Counted from the first letter of the stretch, positions 28,796 to 39,299 are shown. The stretch: DNA of 42,379 bases from Polymyxa betae A26-41 (GCA_003693705.1 RBZT01000700.1:1-42379), one strand, 5' to 3'. The notes: generated from the sequence alone by a model not told the origin. Program-made: numbers and translations.

Positions 28796-30617
28796 TGGGA
28801 AAAATGAAACAACTGCGGCAGGCGAAAGGCTACGAAGCGATGGACGCTGAGATGAGGGGGAGAAAGGAAGATAGGAATCGTATGGAATAGATCCCAGGAG
28901 TGCCTTAAGAAGGGGGTTGTGTGACGGTAGGGTCGAAAAACGAAAAAACAAAACAAAATCAAAGTCATAGAAAAGGCCGCGCTTTGACACTGTGTGATTA
29001 TCAGAAAAATCTATAAAAATTCACATTTTCTTCTGAATCTTGATAGGTTTAACATGATTTATGGAGTTGCACATCTTTACGCCTAATCCATATTTTGTCA
29101 GTGCTGACTAATAAAAAGTTATTCTCTTAAAATCAGGGTTTCGCTCGTTGATTTTTTGTTAAACTTACTTTGTTTGTAGATTCCCCTTCTTGCTTTGTTC
29201 CTTTTTAAGGCGCTTCTGCTTATCGTTCCAAGACACTAACTTCTGGTATGTAAGCTCTTTTTGTTAGAGATCGATTCATTGGGATAGATCACAGAACGGC
29301 GCTGATTCAGGCAGTAATTCCTTCCAGATCAAATCTACCTCGATGGCACTTTTCTGCCTGTTGGAACCTACACGGCCATACTTCTGAAAATACGCTTCAA
29401 ATACAGGCTTATAATTATCAGTTAGGATTATATGGTTGAATTTCAATTGAAAAATCATTTATCTCTTCTTAGGCTGCGAATATTCCTACGCACGTTCCAT
29501 CGTTCATGAAGCGTTGATCGCCTCGATACCAGATCCTGAGGCAATAGTTATAAATTCTACGCCAGATACGCTGCATAGAAAGCATTCAGATTGCAGAGCA
29601 GAAGCGTGAATTCGCAATTCTTGCAGAAACGCAACCAATCTGTCGTGACCACTCTCAAGGAAATTGGCGCGGTAAAGCGGAATTGAAGCACGCCTTTATT
29701 ACCAATAGAATAATGATGATGAAAAGGATACAACAGGAGAGGACAGGGTTGCGCAAACGTCGCTTATTAGAAGGGTCGCGCTGGCCTGGACCACTACTTG
29801 TGAGAGCAGCTGCTTTAGCGGGAGCGGCCTCTTCGTCATCTCCAGGAGGCTCCGTAGGGTTTTTGGGGTGGGGGCGTCGCTCGCTACGCAAACATTAAAG
29901 TTAGTAAAAAAGACAGCTGGATCGGAAGTAAGAAAAGGCGCCTCTACTGGCATCGACAGTTGATAATTCTTGGAATTCGGTTCTCTCGTATGTAGACAGC
30001 TGTAAAGCGACAAAGCGAAAAAATCAATGGTGGTGTTGGTTTACAAATAGGTTGTCTGTGCGAACAAGGCGTTTAGTTGATCCGATGCAAATTTCGAACA
30101 AATATCAGCCTTTAAGAGAGTGTATCGCCACTCCGGTCGCTGTTCAGGACAAAATTTGGAATCCAGACGACGACACTGTTTTCCCAGGCTTTCTGGAAAG
30201 TCGCGAATGAAGATTCTTAGGTACTTTTGGGCTATGAATATGCATTAGGTGATACGATCTGAAGAACGACAGCTAATCCCGATTCAGGGTCTTCATGGAA
30301 ATCAATCAATTCGTCGCTGACGGATTCCTGAATATCTTCAGCAATTTGCACATGTATTAATGTTTGTGATTAAACTGCCACATTTGGGAAAATTTTGTTG
30401 ATTTTGCTAAAAAAAGTGTTTTTTCATGCAGTGTACAGTAACAAAAATTCAATGGTGTCTTCAACAGTCTGAGGCTGGGTTTCAGGGACAACGGATTCAT
30501 GCATCGTTAATGATTTTTTCAGTTATGGGTTTTAGGAACTTGTCATAGACGCATTTCTATCAAATATTGGGGTTTTAGTTACTACATCACGGTGTATGAA
30601 GAGTCTGGAATGCGGGT

Positions 30618-31060
30618 TTATGGAAACCGCCTCTGTAGTTTTGCCAACAGTACATCCAGTTCCTCTGGAGATAGCACAAAGTTTCCAGTTTCTTCAAAGT
30701 CATTATCGACTGTAGTTTCCTCAGACATTTCGGAGTTTTCATTCTCCTCATCGTCTAACAAATTCAGATGAATATCGTGAGGAATCCGGATCAAGATTTC
30801 TTCAAGCTCCTTGTTGACTTCGGTTAAAAGTAACTCGATATCTTCTTCAGATAGCATTTTAACAGTTTCTCGAACTTCATCATTAGAAGTTAGAATATGG
30901 ACCGTAGTGTCTTGAGGTTCGGGTTCAGAGACAGGACTGGAATCTGTAACGTTACATTAGTGGCTGTGATGTAACATGAATGCAAGGGAATACCAAGTTC
31001 AGTGACAGTGACAGCCAGGGTGACGGCCAACATAAAGAGAAGAGCAAAGACGAGCTTCAT
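30618..31060 (-). CDS. Small secreted acidic protein (2 exons; intron 30944-30993)
   Basis: Signal peptide MKLVFALLFMLAVTLA. A 50-nt GT-AG intron with cactaat branch joins in frame to a Glu/Asp-rich body with internal repeat LSEEDIELLL / LSPEELDVLL. Confidence 0.8.
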
Positions 31061-31996: not shown

Positions 31997-32011
31997 CTCA
32001 TTCTGCAAACA
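31997..32011 (+). promoter_or_regulatory. Initiator-like element (TCATTCTGCAAA) upstream of the ATPase ATG
   Basis: TCATTY motif about 30 nt upstream of ATG 32031. A similar GCTCATTTTC lies on the minus strand about 90 nt upstream of the M16 ATG. Confidence 0.35.
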
Positions 32012-32030: not shown

Positions 32031-35000
32031 ATGAAGCTCTTTGCCATCACGTTCCTGGCCTTGGCTTATATAGCCACTGCTGCCCAGCAATCATCCCGCT
32101 CCCAATCTGGGTCCGACCCATCTATCACCAAGTCTCAGAGCTTTCCGCTCAAAGACCGTCTCGGACTTGATATGTCGCGCTCTACCACGATTTCTTCCGG
32201 CTACAAACTCGATGACGATAAGCAACGTGTCACCATCCGCTCTCCAGGTTCGTCCTCGGAGCCTTCTGTCTCCGACAAAGTCGCCCGGATCTTCAGCAGG
32301 GGTCCTTCGTCGCTGAAACCTTCCGAATCCGCCATCATCGAGGAGACGGTCGAGGTCGATTGTAGCCAGGCCGCCCTGCTTGAGATGCTCCAGAAAGCGT
32401 GTCCGAATCTGCAAAACGATGTTCCTGATGCCGACGAAGGTCGTCTGGGCGCCTTGTTCCGTAATATCAAGCACCATGTTAAGAGCAAACTACAATGTTT
32501 ACCGTGCTTCCGCGAATCTGATGCCAATGGTCCTTTCATTACCGACCGTGCCAATGAGGTCCGTTCTGCTCATTCCCATCCTTTTTTCCCATCATAATGT
32601 TTATTTTTTTATAGTTTTTCATATATATTTTATATTTTGTTATTTTTTTTAATTTTTAATTTTTTAGAATACTTTTAATATTTTTTACTATTTTTTGCTT
32701 GCTTTTCAAACACTTACTGACAATGATGTCTTTGTAGGAGAAATGGGCCGGTATGACGATCGATAATTTAATGTCTGAGCTACAGACGGATTCCCAAACG
32801 GGTTTAAGCTCTGATGAAGTGCAGCGTCGGATTGAGTCTATTGGTGCGAACGTCCTGGATAAGCCCAAATCGACTCCGTTCTATGAGATTATGTGGGAGG
32901 CCATTAATAACGCCATCGTCTGGCTCATGGTGGCCGGTATCACGGCCAAGTTCGTCACCAAGAAGATCACCGACGCCGTCGTCATGCTGCTCTGTGTCCT
33001 GTTCCTGATCGGAATGGGAACCTTGCCGGAATGGCAGGCTACACGTCAAGCTAATAATCTCGCTATTGAGGCTCCTGGTCAAGTTCAGGTCCTTCGTGAT
33101 GGACAGCCTCAGGTCAGTAATTACACACTTGCTGTTTTCAAGATTTTTTTCTAATAATTTTTGCCTCATTTGTTCCCATTTTATCAGAATATGTTTTCAA
33201 TTTTATCAAAAAAGTTTTCAATTCTATCCAAAAAGTCCTCAATTTTATCAGAAAAGTTGATCACTTTTGATTGTCTTTGATTTTGTTCACAAGGTTTCTG
33301 TTGTTTCAAAACCCTAAACCCTGACTCCTTGGCAGATGATTTCTGCGGAGCAGCTGGTCCCTGGTGATATCATCACTCTGCGAACTGGTGATCGTGCTCC
33401 TGCTGATTGTCGTGTCATTGAATCCAACTGCCTTCAAATCACCGAGGCCGAACTCACCGGAGAGTCGGAACTGATCGAGAAATCCCCTGAGCCTGTTCAG
33501 GAGCCCGGCTCGTCTGGGACCTACGACAACTTAATCCTCATGGGGACCATGGTCGCCAATGGGGACTGTACGGCCGTGGTTGTCGAGACCGGAATGCGCG
33601 CTCGCTATGGGTCGATTCAGGATATGTTGATCATGGTATGTAACATTACTTGTAGGATTATCGGTTCAAGTCCGATCCTTCTAAGCGTTTTGAATTTTTA
33701 TCTAAAAAAGTTTTATTTAAAAAAAGTTTATATTTATTTTTATTCTTTTCACTTTTCAAAGGATCGCTAATCCCGTTCTTCAGAAAGAGAGGAAATCGAC
33801 TCCGCTGACGGACAAGGTCTCTTCTCTGGTCCTGAATTTCACCAAATTCACTGTTGGTGTCGCGACCGTCCTCTCCGCTACCTGTATCGGCCTGCGCCGA
33901 ATCCCCGACCCGAATTCGAGCTCGAGTTTCGTCCTGCAGAACTTGATGCTGGGTCTGGAACTCTGTATCGCGGTCATCCCGGAAGGCCTTCCTATTGTCT
34001 GCGCATTGGCGTTGAACTCCGGCATGAAAGCGATGAAGGAGATCTGCAACACACGAGCCCGCACCATGTCCGCTGTCGAATGCCTCTCTTCTGTTGATGT
34101 CTTCTGTACGGACAAAACCGGCACTCTCACCACCGGCAAGATGACGGTCGTGGGCGTGTACGTCCCCGGGTCCGAGTTCCGTCTCCTGGCTGATGGTCAG
34201 GCTGTGAAGGATGATATCTGTGCTGGTCAGAGATCGGTCGTGTATGATGGTCCGGAACTCGATCTGATCATGTCGTCGGCTGCATTATGTAATAGTGCCG
34301 AATTACTCGATGGAGCCTGGAAAGGACAAATGTCCGATGTTGCTCTCGCTGAAGTTGCTCATAAGCGAAAGATTGACGCCAAGAAGGTACCGTTTTTCAA
34401 ACAACTTTTCAGCTTTTCAGATTTTTTTCGATTTTTTTCTGAATAATTTTCTGTTTTTTTCTTGTCATCTCGTTTTTTTCATTCATAATATAATGTTTCT
34501 TTATGTCATCTTTCATATTAATTTCTCTTCATTTTATCTTAAATTTCATCATTTTCATCAATGTTGGATCTAACTTCATCTCTAATTTTGTTTTGCAGAT
34601 CTTCGATACAATCGCCACGAACACCTTCGATTCTAAGCGGAAGATGATGTCGGTTGTTGTTAACAACAACCCTGAAAATCCCATCTTCGCATCCATAACC
34701 GATGCTCGATACGTGGCTGTCGTCAAAGGTCTCGCTGTTTCTTCTAAACCCTAAACCCTAATGTTAATATCCCTGTCCAGGTGCTCCGGAGAAGATCCTC
34801 GATTTATGTGATGATCTGCGTCAGTCTAATGGAGAAATCCATCAACTGTCAATGGAAGACCGACACGACCTACAACGGCGTGCTCGCATCCTGTCCGAGT
34901 CCGGATATCGAATCCTGGCGCTGGCGTACCGGCCCCTCCCGAGCCGTGACGATCTCAGCCCGCGATTCGTCGAAGATCGTCTGGTGTTTGTCGGATTTAT

Positions 35001-36811
35001 GGCGATCGTGGATCCGCTGCGTGATTCTGTCCAAGACACCGTTCGCCGCCTTCATCAAGCCGGAATCGCGGTCAAGATGATCACGGGTGATTCGATCGGG
35101 ACGGCGTCCGCCATTGCCCGCCAGGCTCGCATACTCTATAACGCCGACCCGTTCACGGCCTGCGTTGAATGCACGGACCTGCAAGCGTTACGTAAAGAGG
35201 TCGACGATCTCTTCTTTCGACAGCTTCTCCTTCTGTACAAATGTCAACCCGTGGTGGCCTCCAACCCGGACTTGCTGCAGAATATCGCGCGATATCTCAA
35301 AGATGGTGATACTCCGGAGTCCGTCGGCACACAGTTCAAAGAAGCTCAGACAGAACTGGATGATTTCGTGGAACGGACTGCAGTGTTCGCACGAGCGCAG
35401 CCTGAAGATAAGGTCAGTTATGTGATGAGGATTGAAACCCTAAAACCCTAACCCTCTTCAGGTCACTATTGTCGAATCTGTACAACGTCGGAAGCATATC
35501 GTGGCCATGACGGGTGATGGTGTCAATGACGCTCCGGCGTTAAAGAAGGCCGATGCCGGAATCGCGGTGAAATCCGCCACGGACTTGGCGAAACGTGCTG
35601 CCCCTGTGAACTTGTTGGATGAGGACTTCACTCGTGTTGGACAGATCATCTGTGAAGGACGTCGTGTCGCATACAACATGGTCAAGGCCGTCTTCTGCAT
35701 GTTCGGGGGAAACGTCGGTGAGCTCGGCCCTTTCTTGGGTCAACTGGGTGGGATTCCCGCACCACTCCGCGGTCTACAGGTCCTCTGGTTAAACGCCAAC
35801 ACCGATATCTTTAATATCACCCCATTTGCCAACGATCAGGTATGACAAGTGGCTTGCTTTCATACTTTTCACAATTTTCCCAATTGCTAAGACACAATTT
35901 TGAATATATTGCGCGGTTAATTTTTCGAGTCTCACATTTTGCGCTTTCGATTTGGCTCTCTTTTACGCACTTTGTTGCGTTGTTATTTTATGCGTGGCCT
36001 TTATTTTCGCTTTCACTTGGCTTACAAATCCGCACTTTTACAATCATTGTGCGGTTTATTTTTACTCTTCGCGCTTTTTTGAGTTTGCGCGTCGCGTTTT
36101 TTTGCTTTCGATTTGTCTTACAGTCACGCACTTTTCTGCGTTTGTGTTTATCTTGTTCAATCCTTGATTGTGCTTGTTCACTGATTGATTCGTTTATAGC
36201 CAGTCCATGACTTGATGGCGGATCTTCCTATATCTCCATCTGCTCCAGTTCTAAAATATTGGCATTGGGTCCAAATTATTGGCATCAACTTGTTGACCAC
36301 CATGTTCTCCTACTTCATCTTACTGTTCGGCAACCGTCGTCTGACCGGAAGCTTTCTCGGACACGTTTCGGATCCTCATTCCACCTCTGCCGCCAGCGCT
36401 TTTGCCTCCATCAGTACTGCTGTCACGACATTCATGGTCGTATCGCAGCTGCTGCTCTCTTATACATGCCGAAATCTCGAGGGGTCCTTCGTCGGAAGGG
36501 AATTCTTCACGAACTGGCCAATGCACGCGGCTATCATCGGATCATCAGCATTGACCATTGGCGTGCCTTTTATCCCAAAAGTCAACCACTATTTGGAGAT
36601 GCATTCTATGCCTTATCTACTCCTGATCGTGGCCCTCGCATGTTCACCATGCTTAATGCTCGGTCATGAAGCTATGAAACTGATCAGGCGCCGCAATGCA
36701 ATTCGTTTCACGGATGAATCTGCTGTTCCTCCCACACCCGATCAAGGCTTATGGAGTTACACAAAAAGCGCTCTATCAACGCTGCGAAGATTGGTGAAGA
36801 GATCCCATTGA
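32031..36811 (+). CDS. Type II P-type cation ATPase, ATP4/ENA(Na+)-like, with N-terminal signal peptide and Ser-rich extension; 8 exons, 1185 aa
   Basis: Exons 32031-32558, 32738-33112, 33336-33635, 33784-34386, 34599-34728, 34781-35412, 35462-35839 and 36200-36811 sum to 3558 nt with no stop. Motifs TGES, IPEGLP, DKTGTLT, KGAPE, MITGD, ARAQPEDK and MTGDGVNDAPALKKAD are present. Confidence 0.92.
33175..33258. repeat. Intronic 21-bp minisatellite
   Basis: Repeated caattYtatcMRaaaagt units in ATPase intron 2. Confidence 0.7.
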
Positions 36812-37194: not shown

Positions 37195-37427
37195 ATGACA
37201 GAAAATTGACATCATTAATACAATGATGTTCAAGACAGTATAATATTGGTTTTAGAGAAGTTTCGAGATATTCACTCAGATCAGATGATGAATTCAAATT
37301 TGGCTTCTTCACGCAATTATTCACTCGCTGAAGACACTCCAACATACGCTTCTGTGATATACTCAGACAATACAAATAAATTTGAACATAGTAATACCGT
37401 CCCGAATCCTTTCATAGAATATCTCAA
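37195..37427 (-). repeat. Inverted copy of 38972-39206
   Basis: About 235 bp at roughly 85% identity by manual alignment. Translations are SDLSEYLETSLKPILYCLEHHCINDVNF and PDLSEYLQDSLNPILYCLEHHCNNDVNY. Confidence 0.92.
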
Positions 37428-39299
37428 AGACACAGGAGTAAGATTTCTGTATCAGGAAGAAGCCACATCTCTTCTACCTCATACTGGAACGTTATCAAAA
37501 TCTTTATTACACCATACAGATATCGCTCCAGATTTACCTCCTATTCTGGAAACTAGCAATGTAATTCTTTCTTATCAAGTCTCATGTCATAGAAATCTCT
37601 GAGATTTTCGTAATCAGATTGATGAGCCTGTTGAAACTATATACCGGAAACGTCCTCGTATTGAAGAGAAATCATCATCAACAGACATTCAATATTTCTT
37701 CAATCATGATGTTACTGATATTCACGACTATTTCAGTCTCTGCAAGTTTCTGGTGAATTTTTTAGAGCCGTTCTGTCCCTCTATATATTGACTGTAGATT
37801 AGATCAAAGAGCCGAATAATGAAGAACTTCAATCTCTGTCTTCGACTTGTGGTGATACAGATCAATGCTCCATGACAAACTGTCAATTTTTTACCAATGT
37901 GAAAGGACATTATCTGGATGTGAGCGAAATCAGACAAATCCGTTCTGCTCGTTGTACATTACAAAAGCTAATTCTGATTGCGAATCTGTATCGGAAATTG
38001 ATCTGGGCTTCCCGAAAATATGAATGGTCATGGAGGAAGGGTGATGGGATAGTACAGGCCTGGCTGATTCAAGTATGTCGTCCTGTATTACGATGTGTCA
38101 TGGAATGCTGTCAGAAAGATCTCCGGAAGTTTCAGACACTTTGGGGGAATCCCTTCAGTCATTGGGTACTCCAAGAGAAATGTTTCAGAGATGAATGTCG
38201 ATCGAAACCGTAAATTGCCGATCAGTCTATGAATCAGGTCCAAGATAGATCTATTGACCCTCCTGCTCTACAAACTGACCATAATCCGTCCTTAAAACGG
38301 ATGAAGATTTGTTCACCAACAACAAATCTCATGCTGCCAATGTTTAGCGCTCTGCCTGAATTTCTGAAATCGTTAAATTTTGATGTCGAGGAGATCACAG
38401 ATTACATTACACTTTGTGCTTTTCTGGTGAGATTTATTCATATTGAATGCGGAATCTCCCGCTCAATCTTTCATTCAGAAAAAGCAGCCTGATGATAACG
38501 AGTACGCGTTTCTTACTGATACGAACATATTGTTCCCATCAATGGGCAGAAAGCACTCTGTAAGAGACCCCTCTTGATGATGATTTCATATTGACCGAAA
38601 CCTCGGAAATCTCAACTTCGGCAACCACGTTACAGAGATTGATATTGGCGGCCAGTTTATGTCTAAAAATAGCTCGGGCCAAGATTACCGACCCGAAATT
38701 GAACATGAGACGTGAAGGCTGTCGTGATTGGCTGCGGCGAACATGTTACTCAGTACTTTCATGTGTTACAATATGCTGTCAGAATGATCTTCGGGTCTTT
38801 CAATCTCGATGGGGAAATCCGTTCCAGCACAGTCATTTTGGGGAGCTTTGTTATAGGCATAATGGCAAGACTAAACAGTGCGGATTTGAAACTCTCATTA
38901 TCAGTGACAATAAGAAATTCTCCATCAAATCACAACTAGTTCGTGATAGAAGAGACCATGCTCATTGCCTATTGAAATATCCTATGAAAGGATTTGAGAC
39001 GGTAATCCTGTATTCAAGTCTATTTGTAGCGTCTGAATATATCACAGAAGGTCATGTTGATGTGTATTCAGCGAATGAATATTTACGTGAAAAAGCCATA
39101 TTTAAATCCATCACCTGATCTGAGTGAATATCTCCAAGATTCTCTAAATCCAATATTATACTGTCTTGAACATCATTGTAATAATGATGTCAATTATTTC
39201 TGTCATATATTTGGACATTATATAGATCAATATCAATTTCAACAGAATTATTGTCCTGGACCTACTGGACAATGTCCTGCTCTTTCTGCAGTAAATTAG
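37285..39299 (+). pseudogene. Multi-exon gene/pseudogene with three copies of an unrecognised Cys-rich helical domain
   Basis: Inferred introns 37561-37617, 37753-37802, 38427-38478 and 39002-39029. In-frame TAA at 38211 and a further disruption near 38480-38563. The 5' end is uncertain. Confidence 0.6.

Follow-up and report, generated by a model that had tools for sequence, protein, structure and literature searches.

The window, a stretch of 42,379 nucleotides from Polymyxa betae A26-41 (GCA_003693705.1, RBZT01000700.1:1-42379), carries on its plus strand, at 32031-36811, a gene in which a leader with a signal-peptide-like start precedes the core of a type II P-type ATPase. It is a real, undescribed, and lineage-specific variant of the type II pumps. 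The explanation to which we tentatively give most weight is a signal-driven inverted insertion that may place the catalytic domains outside the parasite, facing the host cytosol; a normally oriented pump with a regulatory leader comes second. A role at the host interface is plausible, since P. betae (Phytomyxea, Rhizaria) lives as an obligate parasite inside root cells.

Eight exons sum to 3558 nt and translate to 1185 aa with a single terminal stop. The exon number, the length, the lack of internal stops, and the intact catalytic motifs agree exactly with a previous reading of this DNA from the sequence alone (hereafter the sequence-only reading), and the donor, branch-like, and acceptor sequences named there for intron 1 were confirmed. 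All seven introns are bounded by GT-AG and have an AT content above that of the exons. Intron 1 (32559-32737; 179 nt, phase 0, GC 0.22) joins the leader to the pump, and the GC content at third codon positions of exon 1 (0.60) equals that of the pump exons. The catalytic motifs TGES (342-345), PEGL (E468), DKTGT (D511), KGAPE, MITGD, and GDGVND are kept, and the Pfam domains follow the expected order (Cation_ATPase_N, E1-E2, hydrolase, and Cation_ATPase_C). With actuator (A), N, and P domains and with DKTGT, TGES, GDGVND, and KGAPE present, the product belongs to the type II P-type ATPases. Ten membrane helices, with PEGL in M4 and with M5 and M6 weak, were assigned by hydropathy and alignment. 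Database searches were run exon by exon, and joined models of the intact genes were used for alignments and trees. The P. betae assembly searched comprised 1001 contigs and 27,085,814 bases; the draft genome was published with 1,001 contigs and 27,085,946 bp (PMC6328671).

Three further copies of the leader were found in the genome (C628, C738, and C94), each directly upstream of pump sequence. The C628 copy is intact (1197 aa), with all seven introns, intron 1 included, at matching positions and phases; the C738 and C94 copies are 80-90% identical but frameshifted, with a large deletion in C94. Identity between the window copy and C628 is about 42% in the leader, 38-46% in the remainder of exon 1, 30% in the signal region, and 86% in exon 7. 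Synonymous sites are saturated between the two (proportion of synonymous differences, pS, about 0.7; leader, 0.66-0.79), and nonsynonymous differences amount to a proportion (pN) of 0.35-0.42 for the leader and 0.08-0.35 for the core. As its pN lies well under the saturated pS, the leader is coding and constrained, and the catalytic and ion-site residues are under purifying selection in these two old paralogues. A decaying or non-pumping family, with odd features due to relaxed selection, would agree with two broken copies out of four and with the stem branch of 1.1 substitutions per site. It is the least probable of the alternatives, given a pN far under pS throughout, the conserved exon 7, the full set of intact catalytic motifs, and a locus that is apparently transcribed and spliced.

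The proposal that the leader is spliced to the ATPase is borne out by the matching position and phase of intron 1 in C628, and a single gene formed by leader and pump is supported by the comparison of the copies. In C628, intron 1 measures 69 nt and the gap between leader and core is no longer than that; Met1 is the sole Met before the core. Between the window copy and C628, similarity breaks off at the donor and is found again from the acceptor on, before the conserved Met182 of the core. These features speak against two products, a secreted protein of 188 aa ending at 32597 and an ordinary pump translated from Met182 (32753) through a separate start or intron retention, although the open reading frame 32031-32597 is complete by itself and Met182 is conserved; such an arrangement is improbable. 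Five sequencing runs from two studies, with no RNA label on record, contain 0.69-0.71 of the words of the locus, where 0.69 is predicted for spliced RNA with exon 1 and 0.585 without it (sampling standard deviation, 0.02). By this share, the locus is apparently expressed and spliced; the share says nothing on the junction of exons 1 and 2 itself and cannot separate joined from separate transcripts.

The first 18 aa (32031-32084) consist of an N-terminal stretch with Lys2, a hydrophobic core of 13 residues, and small residues at the likely cleavage site, and have a counterpart in C628. In both intact copies, a basic residue is followed by a hydrophobic core of 10-13 residues, small residues, and a polar Ser-rich stretch; so similar a character at only 30% identity is the behavior expected of signal peptides. 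Both N-termini satisfy a simple rule of our own, which is not SignalP and gives no dependable cleavage sites; among ATG-started stretches 0.9% satisfy it, and among shuffled leaders about 0.5%. Judged by this rule, the basic n-region, the short h-region, and the small residues at -3/-1 are those of a signal peptide and are conserved in character. The N-terminus thus looks like a cleavable endoplasmic reticulum (ER) signal peptide in two diverged copies, and the signal-peptide leader described in the sequence-only reading is supported in its sequence character. A search for paralogues with and without the leader, also proposed there, yielded the three leader-bearing copies and about 20 other type II/III pumps of the genome, in none of which a signal-like start was seen.

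The remainder of exon 1 (32085-32558) encodes, by hydropathy, a Ser/Thr-rich and probably disordered linker, followed by short helices, the last of them basic and containing two conserved Cys (aa 138-159). A structure model of the leader was of low confidence (predicted local distance difference test, 45) and uninformative. Outside the genome, one low-complexity match to the leader was found among 1.84 billion representatives with a tool whose length window hides full-length kin, and two further searches with the leader came back blank. Four weak matches to the Cys helix in the P. betae genome itself were rejected as a repeated element and not related genes; behind them is a dispersed repeat with a short Cys/His-rich reading frame (L046:373-453, L047, L048, and L049). 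The bipartite leader considered in the sequence-only reading was rejected as well in its plastid-type form, as aa 21-80 of the two intact leaders carry 7 and 5 acidic residues and are not acid-poor. We know of no plastid in plasmodiophorids.

When a cleavable signal is followed by a long hydrophilic stretch, that stretch is normally translocated and the first helix is inserted N-exo (PMC13261788). No membrane helix was detected by hydropathy between the signal and M1, and the topology conflict pointed out previously is supported. A cleavable signal ahead of ten helices, with no extra helix, would reverse the entire pump, and such a reversal predicts a shifted positive-inside bias, hence the charge test. 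The charge score was calculated as the number of Lys and Arg (K/R) within 5 residues of the helix ends, which were set by eye, on the ATP side minus the far side. It was -1 in the window copy and -1 in C628, compared to a mean of 7.7 (standard deviation, 2.0; minimum, 3) in 68 prokaryotic homologues and values of 5 to 14 in ten signal-less paralogues, long-branched ones included. At every flank width, both copies scored under all ten paralogues and at or under the lowest prokaryotic value. At the sequence level, the signal-like start and the lost bias do not match the cytosolic N-terminus and positive-inside pattern of type II pumps.

Each of the five loops that normally lie outside has a K/R residue common to both copies (K251, R439, R959, R1028, and K1109); such residues are present in 0-16% of the homologues. 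The gained residues sit right after odd-numbered or right before even-numbered helices, as reversed insertion needs. All five outer loops carry K/R in 1 of the 68 homologues, and the outer-loop total reaches 9 and 11 in the two copies, with a maximum of 6 among the homologues. The M6-M7 loop, in which a basic motif is lost, retains 1-2 K/R in both copies versus a mean of 5.3, and versus 6 in PfATP4; in an inverted pump this short loop would cross the membrane, and the loss fits. N-glycosylation sequons on the ATP side number 0 against 4.0 expected (P = 0.015) in one copy and 2 against 4.4 (P = 0.15) in the other, a weak additional hint of passage through the lumen. Cys residues at aa 326, 379, 489, 501, and 547 (exons 3-4) are common to both intact copies and rare or absent in homologues; they could possibly form disulfides if the catalytic domains pass the ER lumen. 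Overall, the charge pattern suggests that inversion of the entire pump resolves the topology conflict.

A normally oriented pump is rather unlikely, yet it has the orientation of all other P-type pumps in its favor. In that case, the hydrophobic N-terminus would target the ER or anchor in the membrane with no translocation of the downstream part; the leader would stay in the cytosol as a regulatory or sorting domain, and the protein would be a specialized Na+/cation pump within the parasite. The basic flanks kept after M4 and M10 agree with this orientation, and both the basic Cys-pair helix and an RVxF-like motif found only in the C628 leader look cytosolic. K/R followed by a short hydrophobic core is, however, the pattern of a signal peptide and not of a reverse anchor, and normal topology leaves the K/R gains in five outer loops and the M6-M7 loss unexplained.

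Several observations weigh against inversion. With wider flanks, both copies obtain a positive score, and the bias is eroded rather than strongly reversed. The sequences that follow M4 and M10 and the one that precedes M5 keep basic residues, and the stretch after M10 would need to be translocated in an inverted pump. In ATP4, the basic character of the M3-M4 loop is ancestral, the ATP4-type charge control is one partial protein, and the two P. betae copies share history and do not count as independent samples. Both M5 and M6 would need to re-open translocation, yet their hydrophobicity is weak, and in C525, a paralogue with no signal, the M6-M7 loop contains just 2 K/R as well. The basic Cys helix of the leader looks similar to motifs acylated in the cytosol. 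The literature searched, which contained few subscription papers, yielded no P-type pump with a cleavable signal peptide or a reversed orientation. A host-derived membrane may separate the plasmodium from the host cytosol, and an ATP-free gap would starve the pump.

In the inverted insertion that we favor, the signal peptide would be cleaved at the ER and would drive translocation of the 210-residue N-terminal part. M1 would then serve as a stop-transfer helix, every later helix would be oppositely oriented, and the A, N, and P domains would end up in the ER lumen. After exocytosis, the catalytic domains would face from the plasmodium into the host cytosol; alternatively, shed vesicles could deliver the pump to host membranes in an orientation suited to the host cytosol. 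With host ATP, the pump would move cations out of the host cytosol, either to the parasite interior or to a compartment, with protons probably carried the other way. Phytomyxids penetrate to the host cytoplasm (PMC10953367), and the roughly 20 signal-less type II/III pumps, which cover housekeeping needs, were counted in favor of inversion. It is possible, if short of an even chance, that this is the first P-type pump purposely inserted in reverse, its ten helices flipped and host ATP used to strip cations from the host cytosol, a reading which implies a plasmodium surface bathed in host cytosol.

The same pump could be inverted in an internal parasite compartment, either food vacuoles with engulfed host cytoplasm or the ER lumen. 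The charge evidence fits equally, and the plasmodia of phytomyxids take up host organelles and cytoplasm by engulfment (PMC10953367), but ATP would probably be short-lived in a digestive vacuole and no retention or sorting signal was identified, which makes this location doubtful. About as unlikely, by a shade less so, is an effector, with the entire chain secreted or extracted and re-inserted normally in a host membrane to alter the host ion balance. The combination of a signal peptide, a disordered linker, and a cytosolic-type enzyme suits an effector, as do the birth-and-death copies, the weakly hydrophobic M1, M3, and M6 of the window copy, and a head-to-head neighbor that likewise begins with a signal-like peptide. 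Against an effector, M1-M4 of C628 are strongly hydrophobic and would halt translocation, a pump inserted normally in a host membrane should preserve the positive-inside bias, and neither intact leader contains a PEXEL (RxLxE/Q/D) or RxLR motif after the signal.

The nearest database proteins are 33-40% identical to the core. In a tree with the ENA, SERCA, Na/K-like, and ACU-like paralogues of the genome and prokaryotic pumps, in which PfATP4 was not included, the pair of window copy and C628 stands on a stem of 1.1 substitutions per site and joins Phytophthora cinnamomi XP_067800183 at 92/94, a value below the 95 mark of the tool that involves one partial Phytophthora protein and a long branch. 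This protein was called ATP4-type by its motif match to PfATP4, and its source names a fungal-type Na/K efflux. In an earlier tree with Mg and H+ pumps, the pair was pulled to those long branches. PfATP4 (PDB 9n10) is the best PDB match for exon 2 (two-copy profile), the M3-M4 piece, and exon 8; for exons 3, 6, and 7, SERCA, PMCA, or Na/K pumps match as well or better. The ATP4 motifs present are the DP loop between M3 and M4, GKMT after the phosphorylation site, and YTxR after M8, and the M4, M5, and M6 ion ligands are kept. The M8 Glu (PfATP4 E1176) is replaced by Gln1065 in both intact copies. The core appears to be a long-branched type II pump nearest the ATP4-type, with ATP4 ancestry likely; the ATP4 likeness noted previously is supported, and the ENA-like label is not.

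Membership of ENA (IID) was rejected, as the ENA-type pumps of the genome form a separate clade without the M6 Asp and TIGR01523 was never the best model. SERCA/SPCA (IIA) membership was also discarded, since the best trees do not group the pair with the two SERCAs of the genome or with prokaryotic IIA pumps. Transfer from bacteria was rejected: the pair does not group with prokaryotic pumps, and nothing pointed to a recent event. No close relative came up in two metagenome scans and one scan of prokaryotes. PfATP4 and SERCA have common ion ligands (PMC12537908), and these residues therefore do not fix the pumped ion. From the ATP4 ancestry, Na+/K+ is mildly favored, and Ca2+ is a less probable candidate.

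Compared to the ATP4-type pumps (PfATP4 and Phytophthora XP_067800183), with which it has the DP loop, GKMT, YTxR, and the M4-M6 ion ligands in common, the P. betae pump differs by its signal-peptide leader, the M8 Gln in place of Glu1176, the charge-depleted M6-M7 loop, the long branch, and an identity of only about 33% to the nearest database match, and it lacks a large M7-M8 extracellular domain. The ENA pumps, including two C439 pumps of this genome, are similar in M5 (GGNVxEL) and M4 (IAVIPEGL), but in the C439 pumps the M6 Asp is missing, there is no signal, and the charge bias is normal, and they belong to a separate clade. With SERCA, SPCA, and prokaryotic IIA pumps the P. betae pump shares the ligands equivalent to E309, N768, E771, N796, T799, and D800, and TIGR01522 is the best NCBIfam model for four of its exons, far below the cut-off. 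A precedent for the logic of host-side ATP use may be seen, by analogy, in microsporidia, whose hexokinases, cytosolic enzymes that use ATP, carry signal peptides and work at the surface of the parasite (PMC6460350). There too, an intracellular parasite adds a signal peptide so that an ATP-using enzyme works on the host side; the hexokinases are soluble and lie in a surface coat, whereas the P. betae pump has ten helices and would need a topology flip.

The remaining features of the locus lie on the plus strand around and downstream of the leader. A probable transcription start is placed at an initiator-like element, TCATT..TGCAA (31998-32008), about 30 nt before the ATG, with a counterpart at a similar distance in C628 and C94; we take it to resemble protist initiator motifs. 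Exon 1 (32031-32558) is followed by exon 2 (32738-33112) with Cation_ATPase_N (PF00690), M1, M2, and the gained Lys251 in the M1-M2 loop, and by exon 3 (33336-33635) with the actuator domain and TGES (PF00122). Exon 4 (33784-34386) contains M3, the ATP4-like DP loop with Arg439/Arg440, M4 (E468), the phosphorylated D511, and the start of the N domain, which continues in exon 5 (34599-34728). Exon 6 (34781-35412) encodes N and P domains, a P-domain insertion of about 50 aa, and an ATP4-like QPEDK motif, and exon 7 (35462-35839) encodes GDGVND, M5 (N940 and E943), the gained Arg959, and M6 (N967, T970, and D971). The charge-depleted M6-M7 loop, M7-M10 (PF00689) with Gln1065 replacing Glu in M8, the gained Arg1028 and Lys1109, and a basic C-terminal tail are located in exon 8 (36200-36811). 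Tandem telomere-like AAACCCT units occur at the branch position, 19-35 nt before the acceptor, in three introns (33113-33335, 34729-34780, and 35413-35461), and such units are also found in two introns of C628.

Downstream of the pump, DNA at 37195-37458 and 38452-39295 matches the C738 locus in both orientations, and the duplication thus reached past the gene. The head-to-head neighbor on the minus strand (about 30600-31060) has its signal-like start followed, probably after an intron, by a small acidic protein, and similar DNA lies near the C94 copy. The type II/III pumps of the 27-Mb genome, about 20 in number, include an expanded group with PQGL for PEGL in M4; contigs C889, C68, C890, C959, C233, C846, and C824 carry pumps of these types. 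The sole close database match to the window gene is a 97% identical exon 6 fragment from the host, sugar beet (BVRB_026150/KMS93965.1), and this beet gene model is most likely a P. betae contamination of the sugar beet assembly.

It is taken that all P-type pumps are oriented alike, their ATP-binding head lying in the cytosol of whichever cell makes them. If the inversion is true, a host-powered inverted pump would give a parasite that lives inside cells a new means of acquiring ions or of damping the ion signals of its host, and would be a natural experiment in which a ten-helix protein is flipped by a signal peptide and a few charges. It would also be a marker for which membrane divides plasmodiophorids from the host cytosol. 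Proteins with membrane helices are removed in the published secretome pipelines for such organisms (PMC12503489 and PMC4815078), so proteins of this kind would have been missed. Even without inversion, the gene represents an undescribed family of signal-bearing pumps in the vector of beet rhizomania.

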